Positions 1 through 64,000 of a stretch of 64,000 nucleotides of DNA are shown here, in pieces. The notes under the pieces were generated by a model. It was not told the DNA's origin. It saw nothing but the letters and a program-made list of their open reading frames with translations, and searched no databases. Numbering within the stretch: position 1 is the stretch's first letter; each line of letters begins with the position of its first letter. A program made the position numbers and the translations under genes. The stretch lies in the sequence record PV654397.1; one strand, given 5' to 3'.

Positions 1-178
1 CCATTAATGACAATTTCAGTATTAACAAAATACTCACGTAATTCTTCTAGATAATTTGACCATATTTTATGGGTAAACGCATTTTTATTAATTGTGTTAG
101 TACTTCGGTGATTGTGGTGTAATTTAAATAATTCCATATAAGTGAATTGTATATGTTTGTAATTCATATTTCCCCTTA

Positions 179-207
179 CAAAAATAGCCCGAACTTATGT
201 CGGGCTA
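179..207 (-). terminator. Rho-independent terminator
   Basis: TAGCCCGA-N7-TCGGGCTA hairpin followed by a T-run on the minus strand, just past the stop at 214. Confidence 0.8.
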
Positions 208-213
208 TATGTA

Positions 214-828
214 TTATTCATCGTCATCATCGTCGTCGAGATCTAGGTAAATGTCACTATCACCATCATCGAAGTACTCAACCACTACACCAGGAATGTT
301 CAGTGCTGTGAACATCGCATCATATTTTTCATCAGATGGGATAAGAACAAACTCATCAATGCTTTGAATTTCAGGCATACGATCTTCAGGAATACCCATT
401 TGCAATAAGGATTGGATGATTTTTTCTTTGTATTCTTGGAACTTCTCTTCTGATTCAAAATCCATAATAAGTTGTGCTACATAACCATCTTCGTTACCAA
501 ATGCGATTGACATTTGTGCATCAGTACCGACATATGACCATGTACGCTTGCCAGTATTTTTCTCAATGAAGTTCTGAATTTCAAGAACGATTTCATGACG
601 AGAACTATTGGCAATGTTGTTAAGGTTAGCAACACCAGCAATAATTTCTGAACTGTCATTGGATTCTTCGAATGTGCCATAGTCACCTAATACATATTGA
701 ACACCATCACAATGTAATGCATATGCATAATCCAAATCAGCAAGTGAATCACACTTACCACGGATTGGGCGTAGGGAAAGCCCTAGGCGAAGATAACGAA
801 AGTATGTATTAGTATTTGTATTTGTCAA
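214..828 (-). CDS. Hypothetical protein with acidic C-terminal tail
   Basis: ORF; likely TTG start at 828 preceded by AGGAG; ends DLDDDDDDE. Confidence 0.7.
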   Translation of the reverse strand: MTNTNTNTYFRYLRLGLSLRPIRGKCDSLADLDYAYALHCDGVQYVLGDYGTFEESNDSSEIIAGVANLNNIANSSRHEIVLEIQNFIEKNTGKRTWSYVGTDAQMSIAFGNEDGYVAQLIMDFESEEKFQEYKEKIIQSLLQMGIPEDRMPEIQSIDEFVLIPSDEKYDAMFTALNIPGVVVEYFDDGDSDIYLDLDDDDDDE

Positions 829-1117
829 CGTAATGCTCCTTAACAATATAAAAGTAGTTGCTGTTGTTGTCAAAAAAGATGACTAATCCTTTGTAGACAT
901 TTACACCAATCTTGATTTGGCATATTTTATTCGATTTACAAGCCTCAGTCAATAACATTTTGTGCTCTTTACTGAAAGTGTGGAAGAGTGGTTTTACATG
1001 CCACATCTCCACACCATCTAGTACTGGAAAATGTTCACTGAATTTGATCATTGATTCTTGCAAAAAATAACCTGTTAGATTCGAATCATCAGACATGTAA
1101 GTTCGCCAGGAAGTCAA
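809..1117 (-). CDS. Hypothetical protein (probable start 1096)
   Basis: ORF in the tiling path. Confidence 0.65.
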   Translation of the reverse strand: MTSWRTYMSDDSNLTGYFLQESMIKFSEHFPVLDGVEMWHVKPLFHTFSKEHKMLLTEACKSNKICQIKIGVNVYKGLVIFFDNNSNYFYIVKEHYVDKYKY

Positions 1118-1382
1118 TTACTTCGTCATGTGTTAACTTATCACTACGCTCTAGAACATTGATGATGAATGGTGTTTGACTATATAATTCAGCCAGAAAC
1201 GCAACTTCATCAGATGTATAAGAATATCCCATAGGAACAACTTGTGCAGTCCAGTTTCCTAAAGTTTTGTTTGCAATGATTGCAACCACCGTATTACCTT
1301 TGAATTCAACATGGATTGAACGGAAACCCGAATCCTCATTCTGATCCCAAAGTACTGGGTTAGTTTTAAACAGTACTGACAT
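1089..1382 (-). CDS. Hypothetical protein
   Basis: ORF in the tiling path. Confidence 0.7.
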   Translation of the reverse strand: MSVLFKTNPVLWDQNEDSGFRSIHVEFKGNTVVAIIANKTLGNWTAQVVPMGYSYTSDEVAFLAELYSQTPFIINVLERSDKLTHDEVIDFLANLHV

Positions 1383-1384
1383 AG

Positions 1385-1918
1385 TTATTTCCTCATGTAT
1401 TTTATTACATCTTCAAATAGTTTAGTTTTCAGTGCATCATCATTACCAGGTAGAAAAGTACTGAAGCTATTAAAATCTTCATTCTTGGCAAACTCACGCA
1501 TCTGTGTGGAACTGTAGCGACTTATATTTCGGTCAATTCCAGCTTGAACTGCCTTGATTGAACAAAAATTATATAACTTCCCATTGTACGTGTCAAGTGT
1601 TTTTTGGAATGGTTCAAGTCTATCTGAACCACATATGAAAAGAACATCTAAGTACTTTCCATCCAGTTCTCTCATTATATCAAACAGATTATCTTCTGTA
1701 TAGATATTTTCTTGTACAGATGGGTAAAATCCTTCTGTATAGTACATTTTCAGTTCAGGAGGTAATGGGTTTTTGATGGCATCAGTACTGGTACTAAGGA
1801 ATATTTTCAAATCAGCATTGTACTGTTCTTGTAGTGCTTGTGCTTTTTCAAACACTAAGCCATGTCCGTGATGTATTGGGTTACATCTCATGAATGATAG
1901 TATACATGTTTCTTTCAT
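1385..1918 (-). CDS. HxGH-family nucleotidyltransferase (phage cytidylyltransferase/NMNAT-like)
   Basis: RCNPIHHGH (HxGH), KNPL, CGSDR and SSTQMR motifs of the HIGH nucleotidyltransferase fold. Confidence 0.8.
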   Translation of the reverse strand: MKETCILSFMRCNPIHHGHGLVFEKAQALQEQYNADLKIFLSTSTDAIKNPLPPELKMYYTEGFYPSVQENIYTEDNLFDIMRELDGKYLDVLFICGSDRLEPFQKTLDTYNGKLYNFCSIKAVQAGIDRNISRYSSTQMREFAKNEDFNSFSTFLPGNDDALKTKLFEDVIKYMRK

Positions 1919-2439
1919 ATGTTCTTCATCACCTGACCAATAGATTTAAGATGGTTGATTTTAGCTGGAGTCAAATACTTATCCAGTACTATTAAACAAC
2001 TAGGGAATGGAGCACTGTCAGTCTTTTTATCTGGTTCTTCAGGGATACCGAACTTTAAGCGACCTTTTATAAAACAAATACAATCACAAACTTTCGCAGC
2101 ATAATCCTGAAAGGCTATAGTATCAGTTCTTGATGGTACGAGAATCAGTACTGTAGCACCTTTGTTATATGCATCAACTGCCTTAGATAACCACGTTTTC
2201 AAATCACTGTACGGTGGGTTGAGCCACACGATATTGTTTCCCCAGTCCTGTTCAAGTGAATTGTCTTCTGGTGTAAAGAACTTATCACACAATGCAGTTT
2301 CTTTGACACACGCTGCATCTAGTGTAAATTCCCAGAGTTCATCCAAATCTTCAAAGAAATCCTTTGGAGTAGTCCAGTTATCTTTTCCAGTACTGAAATG
2401 TACTGATTGTTTTTTCTTCGAAGCATCCTTCTTCGACAT
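1915..2439 (-). CDS. dam: Phage DNA N6-adenine methyltransferase (T1/HP1-type Dam family)
   Basis: W-T-T-P, FTLDAA, catalytic WLNPPY, VPSRTDT, FIKGRLKF and APFPS motifs. Confidence 0.88.
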   Translation of the reverse strand: MSKKDASKKKQSVHFSTGKDNWTTPKDFFEDLDELWEFTLDAACVKETALCDKFFTPEDNSLEQDWGNNIVWLNPPYSDLKTWLSKAVDAYNKGATVLILVPSRTDTIAFQDYAAKVCDCICFIKGRLKFGIPEEPDKKTDSAPFPSCLIVLDKYLTPAKINHLKSIGQVMKNI

Positions 2440-2455
2440 ACATAATTTCCTTTGA

Positions 2456-3052
2456 TTATAGACAGTTAAGTACTATGTCATCAAAAGTACTACTGTCAAT
2501 GTTGTATTCATATAAAAATTTAAAATGTGATCCATAACGCATCATCAGATTAAACTCTTCTTCAGTATTAAATTTGTAATCATGAAGAGTTTCAAGGGTA
2601 CATGTTAAACCTAAAAACTCAATAATTTCTGATGTTACATCATTTCCTGAATTGAAGTATTTAACCCAAACACATTTTCCTTGTGGGTTGAATTTTCTAT
2701 ATTCTCCTTCTAGTTCTCCATTGACGATATGTGCTTTCGCACTGATTAGATTATTACTATAACGCTCTTCGTAGTAGTTCCCATAACGAGCTTTAAGAAT
2801 TGTAGGCTTCTTGGTTGGAAATAACTTAATGGAAGTTAATTCAAAACCGCACTGCAACTCTTTGATGTACGAAATACATCCCTTTTCTTTAATCACAACA
2901 AAACCAGTAAAATTCTCTTGGTCTTGGTTCTGATTGTCTGAATCAACAAATTCTAGTGTTTTATAAGTGACGCTTTTAGATTTTTTAATAAATGACATCA
3001 TTATTCCTATGGAAACATCAATGACTGTACATGGCGTTGACTGCATCAACAC
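2456..3052 (-). CDS. MORN-repeat/YwqK-like protein
   Basis: NGELEGEYRKFNPQGKCVWVKYFNSG MORN-variant repeat; C-terminal EEEFNLMMRYG. Confidence 0.55.
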   Translation of the reverse strand: MLMQSTPCTVIDVSIGIMMSFIKKSKSVTYKTLEFVDSDNQNQDQENFTGFVVIKEKGCISYIKELQCGFELTSIKLFPTKKPTILKARYGNYYEERYSNNLISAKAHIVNGELEGEYRKFNPQGKCVWVKYFNSGNDVTSEIIEFLGLTCTLETLHDYKFNTEEEFNLMMRYGSHFKFLYEYNIDSSTFDDIVLNCL

Positions 3053-3621
3053 CAGTCGAATTATACACGCTTCGCATGTCTAATTCGACGAAAGTACTAT
3101 GATTTGTTTTAATTAATATTGACGGGGTTTGCTTGAGCATATTTCATCCCCCCGCAGGGGAAAGAACAAAAAAAAGTTTGACGCTGGTGGCCTTCACATA
3201 GTTCATATCACGAATTCTCTTACGAGGCGAAAGCGGGTTGCTCTGTTTCTCTCTATCGCGGTTCTTGTAGCAACGGTCGTCGGTCTTAAACATCCCGACA
3301 CATAATACAAATACCATATGACCAGTACTTGTATTTGATTTCACGAATTTTGGACGCAACTATATTGTATAAATTACGACCGCAAATTTCTCATGAAATC
3401 TCCCTTAGATAATTGGTAAGGTGCGATCCTTATATGTCTATCGAGGAACTCTCTTTATCCTATTGGAGTTCTTTATACAGCCGCATTGCCGTGAGTGGTT
3501 CAAACTATGCCATCATCTAACGGGTTTCATTTGCTGTTCGTACTGAAAGGACTACTCATCTACCCTCTACTTTTCGAGTGGATTAGGCTTTAATCATTTC
3601 CATATGGAACCTTTCAGGATT

Positions 3622-3655
3622 AAAAAAAGGCGACAACATATTCTGCTGTCACCTT
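3622..3655 (-). terminator. Rho-independent terminator
   Basis: AAGGTGACAGC-loop-GTTGTCGCCTT plus T-run on the minus strand after ORF 3684. Confidence 0.75.
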
Positions 3656-3683
3656 ACATTATATCATAAACTTATGGTCTGTC

Positions 3684-4532
3684 TCAGTTGTATTCTGTTT
3701 TTTCAGTGAAATTAGTTAAGATATCTGCACTTAAGCTTCTCATAACCTCAATCTTACTTGGCATGAACCTGTGCTTGTTTTTTACATACAACTCATCATC
3801 TTCAATGAAAGATGTGAACATGAATACCATATCTTCACGTGGAATTGAGAGAATATTACAGTTTTCATTTTCAGCAACAGGGGAATCATTGTAGTACTTA
3901 GAGAATGCAGTACTTTGACGACCGATTATGATAGAATTTCGGATTAGAAAATTACTACAGTACTGAAAATCTTTGTAGTACTTGTCAAGGATATATGGCA
4001 TTATCGCTTCTTTCACTTCTTCATATCCATTGGTACTATCAATTTCAGTACAATAATCTTCTCGGTCTTTTTTCCCTCGATGATTATCAAACTCGTACTC
4101 AAAGAATAAATTTTTATTTAATGAATCATTTGAACCAACTGATCCACTATAGTATGATTTTCTATCATTCATTCGATCATCGGGGCATGATGCATACATA
4201 GAAATGTCATGTGTTGACGTACCGATATAAATTTTCTTAGTAATGTGATTGTACGCGATGTAATCATAATCTTGTACTCCAGTGAGCATTAACTGGAACA
4301 TCAATTCATCAGGAACATCAATTAACGGGTACTCAAACTTCGAATATCTACTACGACAGAAATTCTTTTCAAATGCTCGATATGCGATGAAATCTTTTAG
4401 GTTTGTAATAGATTCATGCTCATGTGTACTACTGGTGCGTACATTGACATTAGTAGACGAGCAATACCCTTCAGATTCTTCTGCGTAGTCATAATAACCC
4501 TTATTGTAGTCAACGATTAGATAAAGTTTCAT
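3684..4532 (-). CDS. Hypothetical protein
   Basis: 282-aa ORF with GGAGA RBS; internal DELMFQLMLTG resembles the family-A motif. Confidence 0.8.
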   Translation of the reverse strand: MKLYLIVDYNKGYYDYAEESEGYCSSTNVNVRTSSTHEHESITNLKDFIAYRAFEKNFCRSRYSKFEYPLIDVPDELMFQLMLTGVQDYDYIAYNHITKKIYIGTSTHDISMYASCPDDRMNDRKSYYSGSVGSNDSLNKNLFFEYEFDNHRGKKDREDYCTEIDSTNGYEEVKEAIMPYILDKYYKDFQYCSNFLIRNSIIIGRQSTAFSKYYNDSPVAENENCNILSIPREDMVFMFTSFIEDDELYVKNKHRFMPSKIEVMRSLSADILTNFTEKTEYN

Positions 4533-4544
4533 ATATCTCCAGAC

Positions 4545-4575
4545 AAAAAAAAGACGAGATATTATATCCCGTCCT
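4545..4575 (-). terminator. Rho-independent terminator
   Basis: GACGGGATAT/ATATCTCGTC stem plus T8 on the minus strand. Confidence 0.75.
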
Positions 4576-4583
4576 TTGGTTTA

Positions 4584-4889
4584 TTAGTGGCTTGCCCAGC
4601 AGTAAACAGGACGTAGATTTTCCATTGGGTTTACTTCAGGCTTCAGTACTGTAACACGAACTTCATACGGAGTACCATCTGCATGATGGAACGTTTCGTA
4701 ATGAATACTCTCAATGAAGGTTTCATATTCTTCTTGAGAACGTGAACGAACTGATGGGGAATATTTCTTTTTGGTATCTGATTTTAGTGTAACACTTACT
4801 AGTTCTGATTCTTCACCATTTTCAAGTTTATTGAAATCGAACTCTGGTACACCTTCAAACATATCAAATTTCATTCCGTTGTCTTCCAT
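4584..4889 (-). CDS. Hypothetical protein
   Basis: ORF with RBS, ends at a terminator. Confidence 0.7.
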   Translation of the reverse strand: MEDNGMKFDMFEGVPEFDFNKLENGEESELVSVTLKSDTKKKYSPSVRSRSQEEYETFIESIHYETFHHADGTPYEVRVTVLKPEVNPMENLRPVYCWASH

Positions 4890-4940
4890 TTTAAATTCCT
4901 TTTTATATAATGTTAGTTAGATAGTTTTTAATAAATCAGA

Positions 4941-5327
4941 TTAGATTACGTCATACGGTAGAGTACCGTGACGGAATTTATCAAGTTGTGCAAGAACTTC
5001 TTTTCGTTCAACAATCTCTGGCACATCTTCTTGCAGTTGGTCACATACTTCAACGATGAAATCCCAATCGCTCTCACAACTCACACGTACTGCTTCAATT
5101 GTTTTCCAATCAGCACTAATTTCACCTTCAGGATTTACATACGAAGGCCATACCTTTCCATAGTCTTGTACTGATTTGTCGTTAAGAACACGAATAGCAT
5201 TGAAAATCTGTCCAGTACTGAAGTGTTTAGTATTCTTCATGTCTTCTAAGCAACATAGCTTAGGTTCACCCTGGACTTCAATCAGAAGTACACCACCAAT
5301 AGCTTTTAGAACAGAACTTGTATTCAT
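4941..5327 (-). CDS. Hypothetical protein
   Basis: ORF with GGAGA RBS. Confidence 0.75.
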   Translation of the reverse strand: MNTSSVLKAIGGVLLIEVQGEPKLCCLEDMKNTKHFSTGQIFNAIRVLNDKSVQDYGKVWPSYVNPEGEISADWKTIEAVRVSCESDWDFIVEVCDQLQEDVPEIVERKEVLAQLDKFRHGTLPYDVI

Positions 5328-5360
5328 CTATATCTCCATTTATCAAAAAAAGATGTGAAC

Positions 5361-5388
5361 ATTATATCACAAGGAATTGTCATGTCCA
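5361..5388 (-). promoter_or_regulatory. sigma70 promoter with TGTG extended -10
   Basis: TGGACA-N16-TATAAT with TGTGA preceding the -10. Confidence 0.55.
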
Positions 5389-5398
5389 CAATATTTTA

Positions 5399-5692
5399 TC
5401 AAATAGTCAAACTTTCGTGCCAGTTATTGAAATCGTTAATAGCCAGCATAAACATATTCTCATCATTAAATTCTAGAATATGTTCATTGTATAAGTAGCT
5501 AATGTACTTATTACTACAATGTTTGCTATTCATAATTAGCATTTCAACTGCACGTTCATACGAACATGGGCTGAGATACAATTTTGTTCCATCAGGGTGC
5601 TCAATCTCCACTGCACCAGGTGGAATAAAACGTTCACCAGTATAAGGGATATACGGCTCTGTTTTGAAAATAAGTTTGAATTTAGTATCCAT
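5399..5692 (-). CDS. Hypothetical protein
   Basis: ORF with GGAGA RBS. Confidence 0.7.
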   Translation of the reverse strand: MDTKFKLIFKTEPYIPYTGERFIPPGAVEIEHPDGTKLYLSPCSYERAVEMLIMNSKHCSNKYISYLYNEHILEFNDENMFMLAINDFNNWHESLTI

Positions 5693-5708
5693 ACCAAATC
5701 CTCCATAA

Positions 5709-6557
5709 TTACATTGTTTCTTTTATGTTGCGTAACATAGTATTAACTATGTTCATCTTCCCGCCTAACTTGAAGTAATATTCCAATTTATTAATAATAT
5801 TACTTTTTAATATCTCAAATATTTGATATTCATTTGTTTCGAAACTAAGTTCGAATTGGAAAGTATATAAATTGTTGAATAGATGTACCAACGATGCATC
5901 AGGTGATTCCATTGTAAATGTGTAGTTGGCACGATAACCAGTACTAATCACTACTTCCGATGATTCACCTTTCATGGATATGTCAATATTATACATCATT
6001 GGGCGACCAGTTGCAATATCTTTCATTCGGAAGAATGCAGTACTACGATACACAACACCATCTTCGGTAACCTTTTCTTGTATAGTTATATTTGAAACTT
6101 CACTCTCTTTGAATTTGGATTCGAATGAATGAATACGATTTGATTTTTCATCATCCGTATACATAGTGCATGTATATTTTCCAAAATCATCTCTAGATGT
6201 ATATGATTTATCGCTGGCGGTTTTATAAAACGAAACCCCATTGATGTGTTCTTCTTTGTACATCATTGTGTCATTGGATTTGTAGTATGAACAATTAGGT
6301 GTTGAAAGAGATTCAAAATTGTTCACATCATGACAGTAAGAAATAGAAGAATCGCTATACAGTACTACATCACGAATTGCAACTTCTTTTGAAGTACCTT
6401 TTTTGACAGAAATTTGAAAGTCATTGCATGGGAAGATTCTATATCCATCGTATGTATCTGATGTACTGATACCAAATGGTGTTGGGGAATTCAGAAATTC
6501 GTTGATATGTTCAAGTACTGAATACTTTTTGAAATTACGAAAATCTGTTGTATCCAT
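5709..6557 (-). CDS. Hypothetical protein
   Basis: 282-aa ORF with AGGAG RBS. Confidence 0.8.
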   Translation of the reverse strand: MDTTDFRNFKKYSVLEHINEFLNSPTPFGISTSDTYDGYRIFPCNDFQISVKKGTSKEVAIRDVVLYSDSSISYCHDVNNFESLSTPNCSYYKSNDTMMYKEEHINGVSFYKTASDKSYTSRDDFGKYTCTMYTDDEKSNRIHSFESKFKESEVSNITIQEKVTEDGVVYRSTAFFRMKDIATGRPMMYNIDISMKGESSEVVISTGYRANYTFTMESPDASLVHLFNNLYTFQFELSFETNEYQIFEILKSNIINKLEYYFKLGGKMNIVNTMLRNIKETM

Positions 6558-6584
6558 AGTAATACAATCTCCTAAATTTCGGAC

Positions 6585-6613
6585 AAAAAATTAGTCGAGA
6601 ATAAATCTCGACT
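6585..6613 (-). terminator. Rho-independent terminator
   Basis: AGTCGAGA-N5-TCTCGACT plus T-run. Confidence 0.7.
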
Positions 6614-6722
6614 TGTGTTTTACTTTACCATTCTTCATTGCTTTTTTACGGTCCACATGTGTTTGAGGTTTATTAAACTCATTCATATGCTTTTGTACAA
6701 AGTTGTTTACATTTTTAGCCAT
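6591..6722 (-). CDS. Small basic phage protein (43 aa, not in the ORF track)
   Basis: MAKNVNNFVQKHMNEFNKPQTHVDRKKAMKNGKVKHKSRFILD; resembles the N-x-V-x-KH..FNK..H-x-DRKK..KHK pattern of small phage proteins. Confidence 0.65.
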   Translation of the reverse strand: MAKNVNNFVQKHMNEFNKPQTHVDRKKAMKNGKVKHKSRFILD

Positions 6723-6724
6723 AC

Positions 6725-7198
6725 TTACTCCAAATCGGGATCTTTAACTGTTAGGCTTTCAATATCACTTGCGTAAAGAACTACATTAGTTTGTGTCTCT
6801 GATACTTTAAAATCATGATAACTATCTTTCACTTTAAAATTATCCAAAATAAACCCTTTACTACAACACATCATGATTTTATCATCTTTGATAGTGTATG
6901 TATTCTTTTTCTTACGTACTTCAGATTGTGGGGTAATATTATCATTGTTACGAATAACACAATCAATGTACTCGTCATTTGTACTCATAGGCATACCCAT
7001 GATAAACGAATTACTAGTACTGATTGTTAGTATGAAAACATTAGTATTTGGATTGTGAAAGAAGTCGTGCATAGTTTTACTGCATAAAAACAAGCACTGA
7101 ATTATGTCCTTTACATTGAACATTATATCATGAACTTTGAATGCGTCCAACTCTAAAATGTCATCTATCTTTCCATTCTCAACAGTTTTAATCTCCAT
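6725..7198 (-). CDS. Hypothetical protein
   Basis: ORF in the tiling path. Confidence 0.7.
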   Translation of the reverse strand: MEIKTVENGKIDDILELDAFKVHDIMFNVKDIIQCLFLCSKTMHDFFHNPNTNVFILTISTSNSFIMGMPMSTNDEYIDCVIRNNDNITPQSEVRKKKNTYTIKDDKIMMCCSKGFILDNFKVKDSYHDFKVSETQTNVVLYASDIESLTVKDPDLE

Positions 7199-7240
7199 GA
7201 TCTATCCTTGATCTTCAAAGGCACTCCATGTGCACATATA

Positions 7241-7741
7241 TTAGGTCACAGCTTTGTATTTCTCCATTGCTTCGGTGATATTCAATACTGCTTGCGGTAC
7301 GTCACTTTTGTTGTATGCAGTGGTTAGTTTTTCCATGTTATTGAGAAGACTTAGAAACAATGGAAGTACTTCTGCATTGTCACTGAAGTTACAATCATTG
7401 ACAGTACTCAATTGGAATAACTCACCTGCATCAACATTGAGTGTGTTGTATTCTTTAACAATGTTTTCTTCAGTATTGAAGATGTAGAATACAGTCCCCA
7501 TGTGGTGTAAGTATACACCAGTATCATTCTGAATATGACATGGGGTGATTACAATTGCTGTGTTATCAATATTATTTACTATTGTCAAACGAAGACTATG
7601 TAACCCAAAGATTACAGTACAATCCTTTGTACTGTGTTGGATCTGGTCACTAGTAAAGGAAGACCCACTATGATTTTTAGATCCATTTAGTATTTCTTTG
7701 ATAATTTTAAATGAATACTTCATCGAATTAGTTAAAAGCAT
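7241..7741 (-). CDS. Family A (FQxS) protein
   Basis: GELFQLSTV. Confidence 0.75.
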   Translation of the reverse strand: MLLTNSMKYSFKIIKEILNGSKNHSGSSFTSDQIQHSTKDCTVIFGLHSLRLTIVNNIDNTAIVITPCHIQNDTGVYLHHMGTVFYIFNTEENIVKEYNTLNVDAGELFQLSTVNDCNFSDNAEVLPLFLSLLNNMEKLTTAYNKSDVPQAVLNITEAMEKYKAVT

Positions 7742-8141
7742 GAACTTTACCTTTAAGTAAATTAATTAATGTTCGCATAGATTCAGTACTGACAGTACCA
7801 AAATCAACACCTAAGCACTCGTATTGAAAGAACTCAATAGAATCAATTGAGTCCAAAGGAATCTCAACAACCTGATTCCCTATACCAGACATAGTAACAT
7901 TGCTTTTATTAATCGTCAAGAAGTTTTTTGAATAAGTATTAAATTTTAGTGAAATCGCATCGGGGTGCTTTGTAACAATGCAGTACTGGGAGCCATACAC
8001 ATATAGTACTTTACTTTCACTAAGATCCGTTTTAAAAAAATGAATCCCATTGAAGTATTTCTCATTGGCTTTCATCGCCGCGATTAGTTCATCTGTTGTT
8101 GTTAACCTTGTTTCGTTCTTCGTTAAACTGTTGAAAAGCAT
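7728..8141 (-). CDS. Family A protein
   Basis: IEFFQYECL. Confidence 0.7.
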   Translation of the reverse strand: MLFNSLTKNETRLTTTDELIAAMKANEKYFNGIHFFKTDLSESKVLYVYGSQYCIVTKHPDAISLKFNTYSKNFLTINKSNVTMSGIGNQVVEIPLDSIDSIEFFQYECLGVDFGTVSTESMRTLINLLKGKVHAFN

Positions 8142-8562
8142 AGAATACTACCTTAACCATTTGTAGTGTTTCAGACATTACTTCTGATGAAAATTCAACA
8201 TCATTGAATTTCAGCATAGTGTTCTGTGTAAAGAAAGTTGCTTCTAAGTCTTCCAGATTGAAGGGTTCATCAAACAAATTAGTACTGAACATGTCAGTCT
8301 TCTTCTTGTATGTGAACAAGAATTTGGAATTATAACGAAGAACTATTTCATCTTTATTAACCAAAATACGTGCAATGTTCTGACGTGTCAATGTGGTAAT
8401 GTTTAAATTGAACACGTTCTTGCGTGTTTCAGTGATATCAACAAAATACCCATCTCCCTGATGGATATTACATCGTACATCCAACCCTTTCTGTACTGTA
8501 TTGAACAGTGCATCTTGAATAAAATAATTTGCTGTATCGATGTTTCCTAAAATGTCTAACAT
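8089..8562 (-). CDS. Family A protein (degenerate)
   Basis: EATFFTQNTM. Confidence 0.65.
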   Translation of the reverse strand: MLDILGNIDTANYFIQDALFNTVQKGLDVRCNIHQGDGYFVDITETRKNVFNLNITTLTRQNIARILVNKDEIVLRYNSKFLFTYKKKTDMFSTNLFDEPFNLEDLEATFFTQNTMLKFNDVEFSSEVMSETLQMVKVVFYAFQQFNEERNKVNNNR

Positions 8563-9074
8563 AACTTCTCCTTGATTGCTGTCATATTTAGAAGAAATTC
8601 TTCAAGCAATTCCTCTGTAACATACTCAACATACCAGAATATCACAATATCTTTTGAAAGTCGAGTATTCTTAAAAATATCTACTAACTCTTTGTAGTAC
8701 TCAAGATCATATACATCTTTTATAATTAGTGAGTACTGAAATAGTGATTCTTCAGTTAACTTAAATTCTGGATATAGTAAGTCATTAAATTCTAATGATT
8801 CTGATTGTACTTTTATTTTAGTGAAGTCATTTGTTAATCCACCATTACATCCATATAATGCAGCGTAATTCACGAACTTGGCTTTTGGATTAAAATCAAG
8901 AACAGTTTCACCATTATATGACAATCGGTGGAACGCCGTGAACTTTGTAATTTGCCACGGTTGCTTAATATCTAAGTCATTTATGTCTTTATTATTGTAC
9001 ATAAGAACAGTGAATATTTCAGCAATCTTCAATAATAATTTAGTACGTGCTAGTACTGTCATAGGTTCAATCAT
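8556..9074 (-). CDS. Family A protein
   Basis: EESLFQYSLI. Confidence 0.75.
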   Translation of the reverse strand: MIEPMTVLARTKLLLKIAEIFTVLMYNNKDINDLDIKQPWQITKFTAFHRLSYNGETVLDFNPKAKFVNYAALYGCNGGLTNDFTKIKVQSESLEFNDLLYPEFKLTEESLFQYSLIIKDVYDLEYYKELVDIFKNTRLSKDIVIFWYVEYVTEELLEEFLLNMTAIKEKLC

Positions 9075-9487
9075 TATACACCTTCATATTCATCAAGGAA
9101 ATCTTCGATGATCATTTCTGCGTCATCCATGTGCATAGCATCAACTTCAACAATGCGAACCTTAGACGTATCCCAAATCATATAGCTAGGAACTGTATCT
9201 GGTTCGTAATCGTTTTTGTACTGAACTGCATCATAGCCGTTAATTTCGCAGTACTCAATCACTCCACGCCATTCGTCGTCACTGCCCATATCCGTCCACA
9301 GAAGCACGTTATCAACATCAACTTCTAAGGTATGTAAGTATACTGTATCAGCGTCAACAACGTTCAGTGGGCTTCTCAGCTTGCGTAATGCAGCTTCTAA
9401 AGCACTGTGTTTGCCACCCATATGAAGGCCACCATACGGGATATAAAAGTTATCAATTTTTACAGTACTCGCATGATACAGTTTCAT
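9074..9487 (-). CDS. Putative ADP-ribosyltransferase-fold protein
   Basis: N-terminal LYH, G-L-H-x-G, and GYDAVQYKNDYE..SYMIW pattern typical of small polyvalent-type ART domains. Confidence 0.45.
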   Translation of the reverse strand: MKLYHASTVKIDNFYIPYGGLHMGGKHSALEAALRKLRSPLNVVDADTVYLHTLEVDVDNVLLWTDMGSDDEWRGVIEYCEINGYDAVQYKNDYEPDTVPSYMIWDTSKVRIVEVDAMHMDDAEMIIEDFLDEYEGV

Positions 9488-42241: not shown

Positions 42242-42381
42242 AGGGACTCCATTAAAAATAATATCAATCCAATAATATACGATTCATATAAAAAGTCAAT
42301 AACATTTTATAAGTAATACCCCTTTATCGAAGTCGCTAAGGTTACCCGCCCTTTAGCCCCCTACGCATTTTGCCATAGTCC

Positions 42382-42466: not shown

Positions 42467-42490
42467 TTCAGTACTAAATCCCTTTACGCA

Positions 42491-42700: not shown

Positions 42701-42768
42701 ATGTATGCCCTCCTGATATAGTTAAGGCCGCTACAAGGCGGCCTATGATGTTTGGTGATGTGTAACGC

Positions 42769-43170: not shown

Positions 43171-43255
43171 GATAAAACTCCTTAATTTAGGAGGGAGAAC
43201 CATTTCCCCCTCTCTATGTAAAACATTATACATGAATCTAAGTACTATGCAAGTA

Positions 43256-43591
43256 CTATTTCATTTTAATACCTGGATTCAGGTAACGGTGAGAGCCGTA
43301 TTCTGGAGAGGTTTCGGTCCAGTACAGTAAATCGATAGTCCCTTTAGCGTTAATCTTATCTACCAGCTTATTCATCTTAGCGTATACTACATCAGCATCG
43401 ATGCGTTTAAAGCCAGTAGCTTTAGTGAAGTAGTAATGATTTACTTCGCTATCGTTAAGGATATACCGAGAACCGTCAGCCGTTTGTGCGACAATGAATG
43501 AGAATGATACTTTACGATCAAGGCCGTCGCAGTATACAGATGAATCATTGGTACGGATGAAAGCTTTAACGATATCGATTGAAGTACTCAT
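43256..43591 (-). CDS. Early-region hypothetical protein
   Basis: ORF with own promoter and RBS. Confidence 0.75.
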   Translation of the reverse strand: MSTSIDIVKAFIRTNDSSVYCDGLDRKVSFSFIVAQTADGSRYILNDSEVNHYYFTKATGFKRIDADVVYAKMNKLVDKINAKGTIDLLYWTETSPEYGSHRYLNPGIKMK

Positions 43592-43752
43592 GGTGAATCT
43601 CCTAACTTTGTGGGCCGTCGCACCGTTGCCGCCCTACGAGATACATTATTGCAGTACTGATATACTTTGTCAATACTTTTTTATTAATAGTTTTAGTTCC
43701 ACCAGCAGATAGTTACTCACCGTTATTAACTATATATTTTGGATACACCTAT

Positions 43753-43814
43753 GCACCCTGTGGGCTAGTTTTTGTCTATGCGTATATAATAGCAAAGGGA
43801 CTGACCGGAGTCAA
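43753..43814 (-). ncRNA. ORF-less promoter + CTAGCCCACAGGGTGC element (copy 1), candidate sRNA
   Basis: TTGACT-N17-TATTAT with the -35 inside a terminator hairpin; motif at 43753-43768. Confidence 0.45.
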
Positions 43815-43826
43815 TCCCTTTTTTTA
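43795..43826. terminator. Repeated terminator hairpin GGGACTGAC-CGGA-GTCAATCCC (also at about 46055, 49334 and a variant at 53352)
   Basis: 9-bp stem with T-runs; identical copies directly after minus-strand gene stops. Confidence 0.75.
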
Positions 43827-43837
43827 TTCTTTTTTTG

Positions 43838-44038
43838 TTAGATGATTCTCCAATCATCAACGATCATGGTAAGATACCGAACCAGTGATTCGAGTGATTC
43901 GTGTTCTCGATAGTCTGCCGCTCCACCAGCGGTACAAGTACAGCCGATTAAGCCGTTTTGTAGTTCCTGGATCTTTACGTCGATCTGGTTGGCTTTAGCT
44001 TCTTTCAGTACTTCAACCAGGGCGATAGCGATAGACAT
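43838..44038 (-). CDS. Early-region hypothetical protein
   Basis: Cassette-driven ORF. Confidence 0.7.
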   Translation of the reverse strand: MSIAIALVEVLKEAKANQIDVKIQELQNGLIGCTCTAGGAADYREHESLESLVRYLTMIVDDWRII

Positions 44039-44128
44039 AATGTTTTACTCCAAACTATTGGCGGGAGAACTATTCCCCCGCTCTATGTAAAACATTATAC
44101 ATTACTGGTTAGTACTGTCAAATAGTTT

Positions 44129-44386
44129 TTATGAAATATCTTCGATGTAGTCGGCCCATTTCATTTTTTCAGTACTGTCAATGGCTACCGGATTATTTGG
44201 ATCAAACCATTCACCATCACCGCAATACATACCCACGGCTACGGTTTTATAGCCATCCTGGGCCGTACACCACGACATTGCACGATAGATATGGCCTTTA
44301 ACTGGTTGCAGTACTGGTAACGTTTTATGGTCTTCTACGTAGGCCATAGCTTGAGGATTTACCCGATATTGTGTGAACTGATCCAT
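44129..44386 (-). CDS. Early-region hypothetical protein
   Basis: Cassette-driven ORF. Confidence 0.7.
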   Translation of the reverse strand: MDQFTQYRVNPQAMAYVEDHKTLPVLQPVKGHIYRAMSWCTAQDGYKTVAVGMYCGDGEWFDPNNPVAIDSTEKMKWADYIEDIS

Positions 44387-44462
44387 TATGTTTCCCCTTG
44401 TAGTTAGTAAAGTTATTACATCAGTACTATCAAGCTATGTCAATAGTACTGAAATAAAACTT

Positions 44463-44687
44463 TTAGATTAGATTATTGAGGCCGTCAATGGTAGACTCAC
44501 TTTCTTCTTTCTCCCATTGTCGGTAGTACTTCCATGCTTCATGATAGGTGGCGATTAGTTCATCTTTTTGATCCTGGTTACATGCCAGTACTGAATCACG
44601 GTGAGCGGTGTTATAGATAGAATCGAATGATTTCTTCTCTTCTGCCAGGTTAGCTACTTCCCGCATCAGTTCATCAAAGTTAGCCAT
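44463..44687 (-). CDS. Early-region hypothetical protein
   Basis: Cassette-driven ORF. Confidence 0.7.
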   Translation of the reverse strand: MANFDELMREVANLAEEKKSFDSIYNTAHRDSVLACNQDQKDELIATYHEAWKYYRQWEKEESESTIDGLNNLI

Positions 44688-44754
44688 TTTATTACTCCTT
44701 TTAGTGGGGGAGGATATCTCCCCCTATGCAAAACATTATACTTTGTTTTAGTTA

Positions 44755-45018
44755 TTATGCAAGTACTTTTTTCATATAAACATTAAATTCTACACCGCCG
44801 TAACCTTCCACGATGATATGTTTTGCGTTATCACGTTTGCACATAGTGAAACCGTTGTTGATATGTTCTGCATTTTCCAGGGCGACATCACCGATAGCGG
44901 CACATACGGCACTAATAACAGTATTCCGCAAAGTACTGGTATCATTGGCGGTCATAGTAGTTTGCAGTACTACGTTGTCGTATACGTGTGCATTGATAGT
45001 GATTTCGATAGTGTTCAT
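44755..45018 (-). CDS. Early-region hypothetical protein
   Basis: Start trimmed to MNTIEI. Confidence 0.7.
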   Translation of the reverse strand: MNTIEITINAHVYDNVVLQTTMTANDTSTLRNTVISAVCAAIGDVALENAEHINNGFTMCKRDNAKHIIVEGYGGVEFNVYMKKVLA

Positions 45019-47280: not shown

Positions 47281-47535
47281 TCAACGTGATATTAGTTTTA
47301 TTTTCTTATTGTATTGTTGATGCTCATAAAGGTTTATCTTTCCTGTGTTCTCGATTACTATCCTGTTGTTAGTGTCCACGTCGATTACACGCAGTTTCCC
47401 GTTGCTTAACTTCCTAGGTAATAGGTTACCATTAATAAACTCATTAGCAAGCTGTACGGCCTTTGTGATGATTCTCTGAGGTGCTTTATAGTGTACCCGT
47501 AAGATGTTATCTTTATATAGTTGAACCTTAATCAT
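47281..47535 (-). CDS. Early-region hypothetical protein
   Basis: ORF with RBS. Confidence 0.7.
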   Translation of the reverse strand: MIKVQLYKDNILRVHYKAPQRIITKAVQLANEFINGNLLPRKLSNGKLRVIDVDTNNRIVIENTGKINLYEHQQYNKKIKLISR

Positions 47536-47596: not shown

Positions 47597-48001
47597 TTAG
47601 ATAACCTGGCGGCGTTTACTGTATACTGTTACACGATTACCCTTACGATCATGTCGGATCTCTTTCTGGTTGCGAATCAGTTCACTTGGACGCTTAAGGT
47701 TTGCCAGGTGATCCGCGTGAGTCCATGCGGTGTGGTTTACCTGTACTTTGATATCAGAATCAGCGATAAACTCATCTTGTGCGTCAAGTATTGCCGCCAG
47801 CATATCCGCTCGTTTTAGTTCTGCTGCTGTCAGTACTGGCTCAGGTGAATTCACAATATCAGAGATTTCTTTGAACTGTACGGCCCAGCGTTGACCTTTC
47901 GGTGCTGTCGTTCCCATGTCTTTAAATGCTGCTCCTTCCTCGCGTGCAACAATACGGGCAGCTTCACGGGTAGCGTAGAATTTAGTAATCATGGTATACA
48001 T
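47597..48001 (-). CDS. Early-region protein, paralog of 61283-61549
   Basis: Shared FxATRE.AR..AR..GA.FKDMG..G.RWA and DRKGNRVTVY. Confidence 0.8.
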   Translation of the reverse strand: MYTMITKFYATREAARIVAREEGAAFKDMGTTAPKGQRWAVQFKEISDIVNSPEPVLTAAELKRADMLAAILDAQDEFIADSDIKVQVNHTAWTHADHLANLKRPSELIRNQKEIRHDRKGNRVTVYSKRRQVI

Positions 48002-49187: not shown

Positions 49188-49290
49188 GTAAAACATTATA
49201 CTTGATTCTAAGTACAATGCAAGTACTTTTTTAAAAATAGTTTTCAGTACTTGATAGTACTAGCCACCAGCAAACAATAGATACATTTAT

Positions 49291-49989: not shown

Positions 49990-50062
49990 TTTTCTTTCCT
50001 CTTAGTGGGGAGAATCATTTCTCCCCTTCATGTAAACTATTATACAGTACTGGATTGCATTG

Positions 50063-50359
50063 TCAATATTTTATTACTTCTTCGTATAATTTATCTAGTA
50101 CTTCGTATATTTCATTTAATGCACTTGATTTAAAAGCTGATAAGCTATACCCTTCATCTTTTAAAAATTTAATAAATTCAGTTGATGACGTGAATCCGAT
50201 CGTTTCATGTGGGAATGAAAAATCAAACGTTCCTTGCATTACGCATTTAAATTCATCAGGTGAAAACGTGTTACCTTTTTCCCGTCGCATAGTGAAAAAT
50301 GTAACACCTGGAATAAACTTAAGCTGTTCCCGTGATTCAACTTCAATAACTGTTTTCAT
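50063..50359 (-). CDS. Early-region hypothetical protein
   Basis: Cassette-driven ORF. Confidence 0.7.
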   Translation of the reverse strand: MKTVIEVESREQLKFIPGVTFFTMRREKGNTFSPDEFKCVMQGTFDFSFPHETIGFTSSTEFIKFLKDEGYSLSAFKSSALNEIYEVLDKLYEEVIKY

Positions 50360-61637: not shown

Positions 61638-61877
61638 TTACATTCCAACCATCGCCGCACGGATCGCAGTAGTGCTATATTTGAATCCGTCCGGTGTTTT
61701 ATCTTGTCCAGTCTGTTCTAAAAATAACATCATATGACGGGCCGCATCATTGCGATTAGTGTTGTCGTTAATAAAATCCAGGGCCAACCGATACAATCCC
61801 TCATCGTTATTAATCCACAGGCTTACATTCCAATGAGTTTTGTTTTTGTGACCTAAGAACATTTTTGATTTAGCCAT
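61638..61877 (-). CDS. Early-region protein, paralog of 59596-59835
   Basis: GHKNKTHWNVSLWINN...TPDGFKYSTTAIRAAMVGM. Confidence 0.8.
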   Translation of the reverse strand: MAKSKMFLGHKNKTHWNVSLWINNDEGLYRLALDFINDNTNRNDAARHMMLFLEQTGQDKTPDGFKYSTTAIRAAMVGM

Positions 61878-61970
61878 TTTTTTAATCCTCTTATATAGTG
61901 GGGAACTATTCCCCACCTGATGTAAAACATTATACGCTTTTAAACATAGTTTGCAAGTACTTTATTAAAC

Positions 61971-62333
61971 TTATTTGTAAATTTTGCCACTGTCAGCCCA
62001 TACCAGGAAACGAGGCATATTATCCCATGCATCTTGTTTTAAGTTTAAGCCGTGCAATTCCTCAGTTGTTGCCATCCCTGGTACTGGCTTACTACACACC
62101 GCGAAATTTTCGCCCATATACTGATAAACCATCGTCAAATCATTTGAGATCATTATATGGATCATTGAATCCAGCATCAAAGTAGCGGCGTATTGTTCAC
62201 GCTTAAGCGGCAACATTGCAATAAGTTCCCGATAAGCTGCAATGTGAATTTTTACCGTTTCAGCCGGAAGACCTTTCATCTCATCGCGGAAGTTTACCAG
62301 GTTAAGCATGATTTTATTGATTTGAGTCGCCAT
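61971..62333 (-). CDS. Early-region hypothetical protein
   Basis: Start trimmed to MATQI. Confidence 0.75.
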   Translation of the reverse strand: MATQINKIMLNLVNFRDEMKGLPAETVKIHIAAYRELIAMLPLKREQYAATLMLDSMIHIMISNDLTMVYQYMGENFAVCSKPVPGMATTEELHGLNLKQDAWDNMPRFLVWADSGKIYK

Positions 62334-62643
62334 CGTTTTAATCTCTCTTAATGTGTAGCGGGAAGTGTTCCCGCTCTCGATGTAAAACATTATACGCTTT
62401 TATCAGTACGGTGCAAGTACTTTCTACAAATACTTTTAAAATAGTTTTCTTTCTATATAGGAGTACTATTATTCAGTACTGAATCAATCCACCAAATCAT
62501 CCCTATACCCCGTAAAACGGCCTCAGACGCATTCTAACGCATTAATACACCTAAGCTATACATTTGCACCACTCCCAACAATCCAGGGCGTTACGGGCCG
62601 TTTAAACGCGTTAAATTATTTTCAATTATTTTGTTTTTAGGTA

Positions 62644-62945
62644 TTGACTTGATCCTGAAAAAGCGTATAATTACTACATAGACGCGAGAAAGCGGAAACC
62701 CCAGAGGGTGCGGAATTACGCCCAAAATTCAAGATATAAAAAAAGGATACACTCCCGCACCCTAGCAGGTAAACGCACTTTCTCAGTACTGAAATATAGT
62801 ACCATAGTCCGGCCCAGGATAGCAAGCAAATTAATTAAAACTTTTTTGCTTCCAGGGTATTGCTTTATTTTTTCAGTACTGTATAATAGTTCCATCAAGT
62901 CGAGAAAGACTCAAGCCCACCGGGTGCATAGTTACGCCCAAAATT
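62644..62945 (+). promoter_or_regulatory. Two plus-strand promoters each followed by a CCC.NNGGGTGC element and TTACGCCCAAAAT, with an inverted degenerate element between (copies 9-11)
   Basis: TTGACT(62644)-N16-TATAAT, motif 62696-62711; TTGCTT(62860)-N16-TATAAT, motif 62913-62927; inverted copy 62757-62769. Confidence 0.6.
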
Positions 62946-63107
62946 CAGTACTGAAAAAATTTTTAAAAATATCCGTCCAGGTCGTTGACATTGCCCCCAG
63001 TTTATAAGATAATGATTCCAGATTCAGAAAAATCTAACTCCAGATACTGCGGGGAAACTATCCCCACGCGGTAGGGGAACTATTGGAAAAACAAAATAAA
63101 ATTTTGA

Positions 63108-63280
63108 TTTAGCCGTCTATACTTCCAGACGTGTAACCATCTAGCCGTTTAGCCATCCAGCCATCCAGAAATCTAGCCGTTTAGCCGTCTAGATGGATAG
63201 CCATCTTTACTTCCAGACTTCTGGAGGGCTAGACATATCTACGCCCAAAATCCATCCAGGGTAACTACACCCAAAATCCG
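63108..63280. repeat. Short iteron-like repeats in non-coding DNA
   Basis: 7x AGCCRTY within 63110-63206, 2x TACTTCCAGAC, TACRCCCAAAAT at about 63240 and 63266. Confidence 0.7.
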
Positions 63281-64000
63281 TCAGTACTATACCATAGATC
63301 TATCTTTTGAAAGGGAGTATTCAGTACTGCCATCATAGCCCTCACTATGTTACCCTAGGAGGATGAAGACTATCATGTAGTACTGAATACTGTTAGAGGG
63401 AATCCACCAGCTTGTGCTGGTGGCATAATGCTTTAGATTAAAATCAGTACTGATACCATTCTGTTAATATCAGTACTGTTATTACGATTTTCATATGAGG
63501 TTCAAAAAGATGTACCACCACAGGAGGAACTATCTTTTCTGTACTGTCTCACGACAGGAGGTAGAGTAAATGAATTGTTCGCAGCAACTCATCACCCTAT
63601 GTAGAACATTATACAGTACTGAATCATAAAGTCAATAACTTTCTTTCATCTTTCAGTACTGATATTCTTGAGAACTACCCGACTACAAACATCATTATAT
63701 CCCACAAATCATAAACGTCCCAACGTAAATTTCAACTTTCGAAGATCCAACTTTTATTTCATAGGTACTCCAAAATTTTTAGGATCGAGATTTAGGATGG
63801 AGTACTAACCAACTTTTTGCTGGAGCCTCAAGGGGTAATTGAATTTTACCCCGAAGGGTAAAGGGGTAATTGAAATTAAGGTGAAAGTAATAATTCAGTA
63901 CTAATCATTGCGTGATTACTTTTGATTACATTTGATGTAATTTGCAAAATGGAAAAGGAGCTTGGAAACTACAAAGTACGGCAGACTTCCTCTGCCTACT

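Follow-up and report, generated by a model that had tools for sequence, protein, structure and literature searches.

The palindrome AGTACT is the most frequent of all hexamers in the genome of Escherichia phage WPEC5, a RaK2-like jumbo phage of the PBECO4/121Q group, although the same genome lacks 22 other palindromic hexamers and GCGC altogether, and several lines of evidence indicate that selection maintains it at the DNA level, probably as a signal read by an as yet unidentified phage protein. The stretch analysed (hereafter the window) comprises 64,000 nucleotides and is the last 64 kb of the genome, equal to positions 317327-381326 of GenBank PV654397.1 at one constant offset on both sides of a masked stretch and with 0 mismatches outside it. 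The flanks are therefore continuous, and exactly 50 letters are masked (26392-26441), covering the 5' end of the annotated CDS0621 (26302-26409, minus strand) plus spacer; these letters were left out of the analysis, and at most one site could hide there.

Abundance and selection of AGTACT

An earlier note, made from the sequence alone, had counted 13 AGTACT in bases 1-2520, and its observation of a massive over-representation is confirmed and is in fact stronger than it was described. Exactly 13 sites start in this interval, while the whole window holds 260, compared to Markov expectations of 21 (order 0), 17 (order 1), 45 (order 2) and 106 (order 3), and AGTACT is the most frequent of all hexamers in the window as well. 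The order-4 value of 216 is inflated, as AGTAC and GTACT are themselves inflated by the motif. The complete genome carries 1,122 copies, 9.5 times the order-1 expectation. The consensus is HAGTACTD, with CAGTACTG preferred (252 occurrences against 3 for the reversed control) and with G at -1 and C at +6 disfavoured. One claim of the note does not hold, namely that the density is similar or higher across the window, as this is wrong for 14 kb of it: 107 sites lie in 1-26174, 15 in 34694-36744 and 138 in 42470-64000, while none are found at 26175-34693 or at 36745-42469.

In order to separate selection on the DNA word from selection on the encoded proteins, the codon-shuffle test that the note had proposed was performed. 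Genome-wide, all three coding frames are used, as the note had stated (AGT-ACT 439, nAG-TAC-Tnn 160, nnA-GTA-CTn 311), and the 910 in-gene sites compare with 252±13 after shuffling of synonymous codons (z=50) and with 152 after shuffling of codon order. Within the ORFs of the window there are 178 sites, against 49.9±5.9 after synonymous shuffling (z=22). Of the Ser-Thr pairs, 53% are spelled AGTACT against 13% expected, and the dipeptides are themselves enriched: Ser-Thr occurs 836 times against 566 expected, while Thr-Ser occurs 558 times, and Val-Leu occurs 842 times against 638 expected. Orthologous sites are conserved in PBECO4 in 48 of 68 and 48 of 63 cases (71-76%), compared to 45% for all hexamers (p = 2e-5 and 6e-7). 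Outside the terminal repeats the density is similar in coding and non-coding DNA (2.45 and 3.35 per kb), and mean spacing is 390, 371 and 400 bp in three genera (CV 0.94, 0.87 and 0.87), which is somewhat more even than random.

Nine of nine RaK2-like genomes from six host genera share the excess, with a 6-7-fold surplus over the reversed word (hosts given as Escherichia, Klebsiella, Cronobacter, Salmonella, Yersinia, Erwinia, Pectobacterium and Xanthomonas), while three outgroup phages are depleted (XacN1 0 vs 127, Atu_ph07 25 vs 82, T4 29 vs 51). In three genera AGTACT is the top hexamer, with observed/expected ratios of 9.5-11.7, and the flank rule (G at -1 in only 5-13% of sites) holds in all genomes tested, including a Xanthomonas phage. 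The contrast to the palindrome avoidance normally seen in phages, which the note had pointed out, is far starker than the note had known, as 22-28 of 64 palindromic hexamers have zero copies in each genus and GCGC is 0 vs 250 expected. Escherichia coli K-12 has 400 sites in 4.64 Mb, making the site 34 times denser in the phage, so that it could work as a ‘self’ mark.

Promoter boxes, AGTACT-free islands and a methyltransferase

The right 21.7 kb of the window (42339-64000, minus strand) is one copy of the 21,662-bp direct terminal repeat, 100% identical to record positions 1-21662, and has the highest density of sites, 4.2 per kb in coding and 12.3 per kb in non-coding DNA. It is an early region with 36 strict sigma-70-type promoters on the minus strand, of which 32 carry AGTACT at fixed positions, 27 and 7/8 bases upstream of the first base of the -10 hexamer. 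Both promoter examples given in the earlier note are correct. At 50039-50066 (minus strand), a promoter of the class TTGACA-16-TATAAT, AGTACT (50046-50051) abuts the -10 and fills the last six spacer bases but one, centred near -16.5; 18 of the 36 promoters have this downstream box. At 49195-49251 (minus strand), a promoter of the class AGTAC-TTGCAT-16-TATAAT, AGTACT (49222-49227) overlaps the first base of the -35, centred near -36.5, and a further site (49246-49251) lies about 24 bp upstream; 20 of the 36 promoters have the upstream box, and eight have both boxes, 20 bp apart. The same two-box layout and the 20-21 bp spacing peak recur in CBB and fHe-Yen9-04. The boxes lie upstream of the transcription start, so they act as DNA and not as RNA.

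The two blocks devoid of AGTACT differ in character. Island 1 (26248-34693, minus strand; 8,447 bp) covers about 23 co-oriented genes (CDS0621-0643/0644) and contains the masked letters. It has no AGT on the plus strand, and hence no ACT on the sense strand in any frame, against about 174 expected, while AGTACA replaces AGTACT as the top hexamer (44 vs 3.9 expected). The same absence of ACT holds in PBECO4, 121Q and SD-15_S21, that is in four Asteriusvirus genomes, and 1,401 substitutions created no ACT against 58±7 expected, as for a trinucleotide-less message maintained by selection, by analogy with ACA-less mRNAs and MazF. Island 2 (36745-42469, minus strand) is a tandem array of about 23 paralogous genes of 70-85 aa which abuts the terminal-repeat boundary; here ACT is at normal frequency, GTAC is poor (2.25 per kb), and the same island is present in PBECO4.

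An orphan N6-adenine DNA methyltransferase (1915-2439, minus strand; PF05869, TIGR01712, phrog_111) is conserved at 42-68% identity in all five distant RaK2-like genomes tested, and is a candidate writer. Characterised members of this family mostly methylate GATC or act non-specifically, so it may have nothing to do with AGTACT. A second phage methyltransferase is a short DNMT3-like C5 enzyme, which fits the CpG methylation reported for RaK2 (PMC3622015) and not AGTACT. Searches of WPEC5, CBB and fHe-Yen9-04 returned no MutH or MutS homologue, while positive controls were recovered. No reader protein was found among the clade-conserved small proteins of the early region and of the methyltransferase neighbourhood, all of which fall in PHROG families of unknown function.

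Possible readings of the signal

The interpretation offered in the earlier note, that AGTACT is positively selected as a genome-wide self mark, for example as the binding site of a phage coating or regulatory protein or as a site of base modification, is partly supported: selection at the DNA level across the genome is borne out, but not what reads the site. The explanation favoured here, with moderate confidence, is that HAGTACTD is the recognition site of a phage-encoded, sequence-specific homodimeric dsDNA-binding protein conserved throughout the RaK2-like jumbo phages. In this view, selection holds the site at about one per 390 bp along the whole chromosome, inside and outside genes, making phage DNA recognisably different from host DNA, where it occurs once per 11.6 kb. 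The same site would be used as an operator at early promoters, where boxes 20-21 bp apart, and so on one face of the helix, bracket the spacer of the strong sigma-70-type promoters, so that a bound dimer or pair of dimers would compete with RNA polymerase and switch early transcription off, or otherwise gate it. As this lineage has purged almost every other restriction-type palindrome, the 1,100 sites are probably also covalently protected in the virion, the conserved orphan methyltransferase being the obvious candidate. While the excess, the selection at the DNA level, the clade specificity, the promoter geometry and the host contrast were demonstrated by the analysis, it is by inference alone that a protein reads the site, that it is phage-encoded, that it represses and that the site is methylated. 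Moreover, a repressor with about 1,100 sites per genome copy would have to be very abundant, and the two conserved blocks totalling 14 kb do without AGTACT and are evidently viable, one of them keeping AGTACA instead, so a perfect palindrome is not indispensable everywhere.

A less likely alternative, which overlaps with rather than excludes the above, is that AGTACT is primarily the target of the orphan methyltransferase, with the methyl mark itself protecting against ScaI-type restriction and switching early promoters according to full, hemi- or unmethylated state, as Dam/GATC does at IS10, pap or P1 promoters, without a separate sequence-specific reader. This is consistent with the presence of the enzyme in all RaK2-like genomes tested, with the tolerance of 1,100 copies of a restriction-type palindrome under extreme restriction pressure, with the location of sites in or beside the -35 and -10, and with the co-occurrence in cyanobacteria of highly iterated palindromes and methyltransferases specific for them (PMC4390886). 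However, methylation alone gives no reason to multiply sites nine-fold or to alter protein sequences, and some reader is still needed. Dam/GATC signalling (SeqA, MutH, methylation-sensitive promoters) likewise combines a palindromic site every few hundred bp, an orphan N6-adenine methyltransferase and sites inside -10/-35 elements, but GATC needs no enrichment and is itself under-represented here (O/E 0.63), and the lack of MutH and MutS hits argues against a methyl-directed mismatch repair signal. A functionless excess, produced by biased mutation or a very-short-patch-like repair converting near-matches into AGTACT as in Elhai's model for HIP1, is very unlikely. One-mismatch neighbours are mildly enriched (1.1-2.9-fold), as a halo of decayed or nascent sites would be, and a methyltransferase is present, but no neighbour class is drained (the deamination neighbour AGTATT/AATACT has O/E 1.3 in all three genera), and further points against such a process are the lack of MutH and MutS hits in three genomes, the positional conservation, the fixed promoter positions in three genera, the more even spacing, and two blocks within the same replicating genome which escape it for the whole history of the genus.

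A signal acting in RNA, with AGUACU as a cleavage, stability or translation motif, is also very unlikely. RNA-level selection on a sub-word does occur in this genus, as seen from the strand-specific, all-frame ban on ACU in island 1, and a RelE/YafQ/ParE-like protein (84 aa, 47281-47535) is encoded in the early region, but the enriched word is a perfect palindrome with symmetric flank preferences, is enriched in non-transcribed promoter DNA and in genes of both orientations, and, apart from AGTACT itself, sense-strand TACT is not commoner in the window than its complement AGTA. Equally doubtful is that a host protein reads the site, for example SlmA, whose binding site GTGAGTACTCAC has the identical 6-bp core, or that it serves replication or recombination as a priming or Chi-like signal usable in both orientations. 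Sharanji-infected cells do filament (PMC11895373), the density is highest at the genome ends, where exonucleases enter, and a palindrome works on both strands. However, GTGAGTACTCAC has 0 copies and GTNAGTACTNAC only 2-4 per genome, the flanks are the opposite of what SlmA needs, with GAGTACTC the rarest of the 16 flank pairs, and the excess is the same in phages of Xanthomonas and of Enterobacterales. Chi, KOPS and DNA uptake sequences are likewise over-represented words maintained by selection which mark ‘own’ DNA for a translocating or recombining machine, but they are asymmetric and skewed in orientation, while AGTACT and its flank preferences are symmetric, and primases read trinucleotides and are not known to need any enrichment.

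Related systems and implications

The closest counterparts are HIP1 (GCGATCGC) and other highly iterated palindromes of cyanobacteria (PMC4390886, PMC5861425), which are likewise short palindromes of unknown function, many-fold over-represented across whole genomes, within and between genes and in all frames, conserved in position beyond background, which implies selection, and accompanied by orphan methyltransferases. The present case differs in that the carrier is a virus clade and not a cellular phylum, that the word is AT-rich and 6 bp with weak 8-bp flanks, that it sits in a genome otherwise purged of palindromes, and that it occupies fixed operator-like positions in early promoters and is densest at the chromosome ends. 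The excess is about 10-fold, against 15-300-fold for HIP1, and no match between site and methyltransferase has been shown. The mechanism proposed resembles that of the genome-coating proteins phi29 p6 and SPO1 TF1, abundant phage proteins which bind along the whole viral genome, with preference for the ends or early region, and repress early promoters. However, p6 reads a bendability pattern and TF1 prefers hmU-DNA, neither is known to rely on a defined hexamer, and neither genome is known to be enriched for a palindrome.

A more far-reaching reading, which remains tentative, links two novelties. RaK2-like jumbo phages would carry the first viral ‘highly iterated palindrome’, although a description outside the open-access text searched is possible, as a roughly 10-fold enriched, probably methylated self-mark, read by an abundant phage protein which distinguishes phage from host DNA and shuts off the early promoters in the terminal repeats. 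In Asteriusvirus, the operon-like block of about 23 genes kept completely free of ACU would in turn be immune to an ACU-specific endoribonuclease, which could be a host abortive-infection toxin or the phage's own early RelE/YafQ-like protein used for host shut-off, the latter being only a lead. This would be a natural counterpart of engineered ACA-less, MazF-proof messages, with the pull towards AGTACT persisting there as AGTACA.

Phages are the textbook case of palindrome avoidance, and this lineage is an extreme one, yet it makes a single restriction-type palindrome the commonest word in genomes of about 350-380 kb, pays for this with altered codon choice and even altered protein sequences, and has kept it across genera that infect Enterobacterales and Xanthomonas. 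In practical terms, ScaI and RsaI site counts, nanopore error profiles and synthetic recoding of these phages all depend on this word. The ACU-free gene block offers a direct handle on a sequence-specific RNase conflict between phage and host, and the long-unsolved problem of HIP1 in cyanobacteria is given a small, genetically tractable viral model. The hyper-abundance of AGTACT points to an undiscovered DNA-reading system, which could be a self/non-self mark, genome coating or an early-late switch, in jumbo phages that do not build a nucleus.

Abundance of AGTACT and selection at the DNA level

The window is identical, outside its 50 N, to the last 64,000 bp (317327-381326) of Escherichia phage WPEC5 (GenBank PV654397.1), a 381,326-bp linear genome of the PBECO4/121Q group (Asteriusvirus), a 'RaK2-like' jumbo myovirus. 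Nearly all genes in the window lie on the minus strand. Both flanks of the N stretch (26392-26441) match the record at the same offset, so the sequence is continuous and exactly 50 letters are masked; these overlap the 5' end of annotated CDS0621 and were neither read nor used. The right 21,662 bp of the window (42339-64000) is the right copy of a perfect direct terminal repeat, while a relative, Sharanji, has a repeat of 20,668 bp (PMC11895373). The massive over-representation of the palindrome AGTACT claimed in the earlier note is confirmed, and extended, by the present counts: 13 copies are found in bases 1-2520 and 260 in the window, compared to Markov expectations of 21, 17, 45 and 106 at orders 0 to 3, and AGTACT is the single most frequent hexamer, followed by its own extensions GTACTG and CAGTAC. 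The whole genome holds 1,122 sites, 9.5 times the order-1 expectation. The logo is HAGTACTD, with C at -1 in 48% of the sites and G in only 7%, and the mirror image at +6. CAGTACTG occurs 252 times, against 3 for the reversed control word.

Synonymous codons were permuted within each of 693 greedily called ORFs covering 92% of the genome, a procedure that keeps every protein and the codon usage of each gene. This gives 252±13 sites against 910 observed (z=50), while shuffling the codon order gives 152; in the window alone, shuffling gives 49.9±5.9 against 178 observed. Of 836 Ser-Thr dipeptides 439 are spelled AGTACT, against 106-126 expected, 437 of 842 Val-Leu pairs use GTA-CTN, against 171 expected, and 160 of 404 [KQE]-Tyr-[FLSYCW] triplets carry the word, against 30 expected. 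The proteins themselves are bent, as Ser-Thr occurs 836 times against 566 expected while Thr-Ser occurs 558 times, and Val-Leu occurs 842 times against 638 expected while Leu-Val occurs 596 times. In a 19.8-kb alignment with PBECO4 at 84% identity, 48 of 68 and 48 of 63 sites are conserved, while all hexamers are conserved at 45%. Outside the terminal repeats, coding and non-coding DNA carry similar densities (2.45 and 3.35 per kb, respectively). The mean spacing is 390, 371 and 400 bp in WPEC5, Pectobacterium phage CBB and Yersinia phage fHe-Yen9-04, with a CV of 0.94, 0.87 and 0.87, which is somewhat more even than random. No short-range phasing was seen outside promoters, as pair distances are flat at the expected ~2.1 per bin, apart from the promoter pairs at 20-21 bp.

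Phage clade, palindrome purge and early promoters

The excess is a property of a phage clade and not of a host. Compared to the reversed word TCATGA, AGTACT occurs 1,122 versus 143 times in WPEC5, 1,114 versus 174 in Erwinia phage Kaldavass, 1,105 versus 186 in Xanthomonas phage XbC2, 1,008 versus 137 in fHe-Yen9-04, 1,235 versus 187 in CBB, 853 versus 145 in Salmonella phage 7t3, 937 versus 142 in Klebsiella phage RaK2 and 1,011 versus 169 in Cronobacter phage GAP32, while PBECO4 has comparable local densities. In the outgroups the counts are 0 versus 127 (XacN1), 25 versus 82 (Atu_ph07) and 29 versus 51 (T4). The flank rule holds in every genome tested, including the Xanthomonas phage. E. 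coli K-12 has only 400 sites in 4.64 Mb, a 34-fold contrast in density with the phage. The genomic context makes the excess striking. In WPEC5, 22 of the 64 palindromic hexamers have zero copies, with expectations up to 54, five more have at most four copies, and GCGC occurs 0 times against 250 expected. CBB lacks 28 palindromic hexamers and fHe-Yen9-04 lacks 22, the three genomes having sizes of 354-381 kb. Some differences are host-specific, as GATATC and ACGCGT are kept in WPEC5 but purged in CBB (172 and 6 copies, respectively, for GATATC). AGTACT is the only palindrome strongly enriched in all three. A further compositional feature shared by the three genera is that stretches of 1.8-5.3 kb lack TTTT or AAAA on one strand, far beyond chance (record 230127-235407 in WPEC5, 134702-137257 in CBB and 132963-134750 in fHe-Yen9-04), possibly representing a highly expressed gene that avoids A-runs.

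The terminal repeat holds 36 strict sigma-70-type promoters on the minus strand, many with a perfect TTGACA-16-TATAAT, and 32 of the 36 carry AGTACT at fixed places. In 20 it overlaps the first base of a TTGCAA/TTGCAT -35 (AGTAC-TTGCAA), in 18 it abuts the -10 (AGTACTG-TATAAT or AGTACTGG-CATAAT) and in 3 it overlaps the end of the -35. Eight have both main boxes, 20 bp apart. The same two-box layout recurs in CBB (spacing peak 21 bp, 23 pairs) and in fHe-Yen9-04 (20 bp, 15 pairs). The boxes lie upstream of the transcription start, and promoters with the -10 box also occur outside the repeat. Outside the window, at record 26672-44914, about 15 RCC1-like ('chromosome condensation regulator') repeat genes lie on the + strand, each followed by a terminator hairpin whose stem is built from two AGTACT-like copies (GCCAGTACT..AGTACTGGC plus a T-tract).

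AGTACT-free islands and the ACT desert

Two islands within the window lack AGTACT. Recent horizontal acquisition was rejected as their cause, as both are present and site-free in PBECO4 at 77-85% identity and obey the palindrome purge of the genome. They are absent from CBB and fHe-Yen9-04, where no gap exceeds 2.7 kb. The whole stretch 9,500-42,338, a 33-kb region of small-gene arrays, is an Asteriusvirus-specific accessory region without homologues in CBB or fHe-Yen9-04, and separates the terminal repeat from the conserved block (window 214-9487) that adjoins the repeat in those genera. Island 2 (36745-42469) is a tandem array of about 23 overlapping paralogous genes of 70-85 aa, the largest paralogue family in the genome, and the array (36745-42338) lies directly inside the terminal-repeat boundary. 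Its sense strand is A-rich, and it has few GTAC and only the variant TGTACT, 9 times.

Island 1 is something else. The + strand has no AGT at all for 8,447 bp (window 26248-34693; minus-strand genes CDS0621-0644) or, equivalently, the sense strand has no ACT in any frame, where about 174 are expected. This is by far the most extreme word desert in the genome. The Thr codon ACT is used 0% of the time there, against 46% genome-wide, and CTN codons are thinned because A-CTN is barred. The same desert exists in PBECO4 (7,620 bp), 121Q (7,511 bp) and Salmonella phage SD-15_S21 (7,212 bp), despite about 20% divergence. WPEC5 and PBECO4 differ by 1,401 substitutions over 6,796 aligned positions, yet none creates the word, while position-randomised substitutions would create 58±7. 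The desert ends exactly at the third codon of CDS0620, just after a promoter-like TTGAAA-17-TATAAT. Within it, AGTACA is the commonest sense-strand hexamer (44 against 3.9 expected); the pull towards AGTACT therefore persists, but the final T is forbidden.

A strand-specific, frame-independent, absolute ban is what immunity to an ACU-cutting endoribonuclease would look like, by analogy with ACA-less, MazF-resistant messages, although no known ACU-specific enzyme was found in the literature searched. One lead is an 84-aa early protein of the terminal repeat (47281-47535, minus strand), conserved in CBB and fHe-Yen9-04, which belongs to the RelE/YafQ/ParE toxin superfamily as judged from sequence and predicted structure. 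Its homologues carry Pfam PF24732, and one is named 'YafQ-like ribonuclease toxin'. The ESM Atlas feature score is 0.96, and the AlphaFold model has a pLDDT of 89.7, its best PDB matches, though weak (TM 0.35-0.5), being almost all YoeB, YafQ, RelE or ParE. His15, Arg41, Arg58, His72, Tyr75 and Asn76 are invariant. The adjacent 134-aa gene (47597-48001, minus strand) is co-conserved and could be its partner.

Candidate readers and writers of the palindrome

The clade conserves an orphan N6-adenine methyltransferase (window 1915-2439; TIGR01712, PF05869; 42-68% identity in five distant genomes) inside a syntenic block, although its specificity cannot be inferred. Beside this block, a non-coding element of ~400 nt (window ~3200-3600, minus strand as aligned) is conserved at 73-86% identity in Erwinia, Xanthomonas, Yersinia, Serratia and Pectobacterium jumbo phages, with invariant blocks and compensatory changes in three helices. 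It has no Rfam match and is therefore probably an undescribed structured RNA; Rfam and ARAGORN searches of the window as a whole likewise returned nothing. A second methyltransferase (record 100609-101469, 286 aa) is a short DNMT3-like C5 cytosine enzyme, which fits the CpG methylation reported for RaK2 (PMC3622015). The phage also encodes its own sigma-70-family sigma factor (record 72077-73045, 322 aa, regions 2-4). Apart from these, the 100 kb of the record's annotation that was examined, which leaves out ~196 kb, added only HNH and other endonucleases and the RCC1-like repeat genes. Searches of 25 window proteins against PHROGs, NCBIfam, PDB sequences and the ESM Atlas gave only 'unknown function', the exceptions being the N6-adenine methyltransferase, a nucleotidyltransferase and the RelE/ParE-like protein, and no reader protein was identified.

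Several alternative readings were considered and rejected. A decoy or titration of SlmA was rejected, as the full SlmA site is absent (0 copies) and the flanks are the opposite of what SlmA needs, and a phage methyl-directed mismatch repair system was rejected since no MutH or MutS is encoded. A VSP-like biased repair would be expected to leave a depleted neighbour word, yet none was found and the deamination neighbour AGTATT is not depleted, which argues against a repair-driven origin of the kind proposed for HIP1 (PMC4390886). Methylation alone cannot reward having more sites, so a reader is required in any model. We therefore favour, with moderate confidence only, a phage-encoded dimeric binding protein, which would use the word as a genome-wide mark and as an early-promoter operator, with methylation as a likely second layer. 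The excess, its clade specificity among the genomes tested and the selection on the DNA itself are demonstrated by the analysis, while the existence of a binding protein, its action at the promoters and the modification of the sites are inferred. The interpretation put forward in the earlier note, a positively selected self mark that is bound by a phage protein or modified, is thus supported only in part, namely as to selection and action at the DNA level.

The closest phenomenon is HIP1 of cyanobacteria, also a hyper-abundant palindrome under selection, for which no function has been established and which is linked to orphan methyltransferases. The closest mechanism is that of genome-wide phage DNA-binding proteins that also repress early promoters, such as phi29 p6 and SPO1 TF1. 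No description of the AGTACT excess in these phages was found in the searchable literature, subscription journals excluded, and the papers on RaK2 (PMC3622015) and Sharanji (PMC11895373) and an overview of jumbo phages do not mention it. What differs from the known highly iterated palindromes is that the present one is viral and has a putative use as an operator. The ACT-free gene block is an unexpected second finding, which suggests ACU-free mRNAs that are immune to a sequence-specific RNase.
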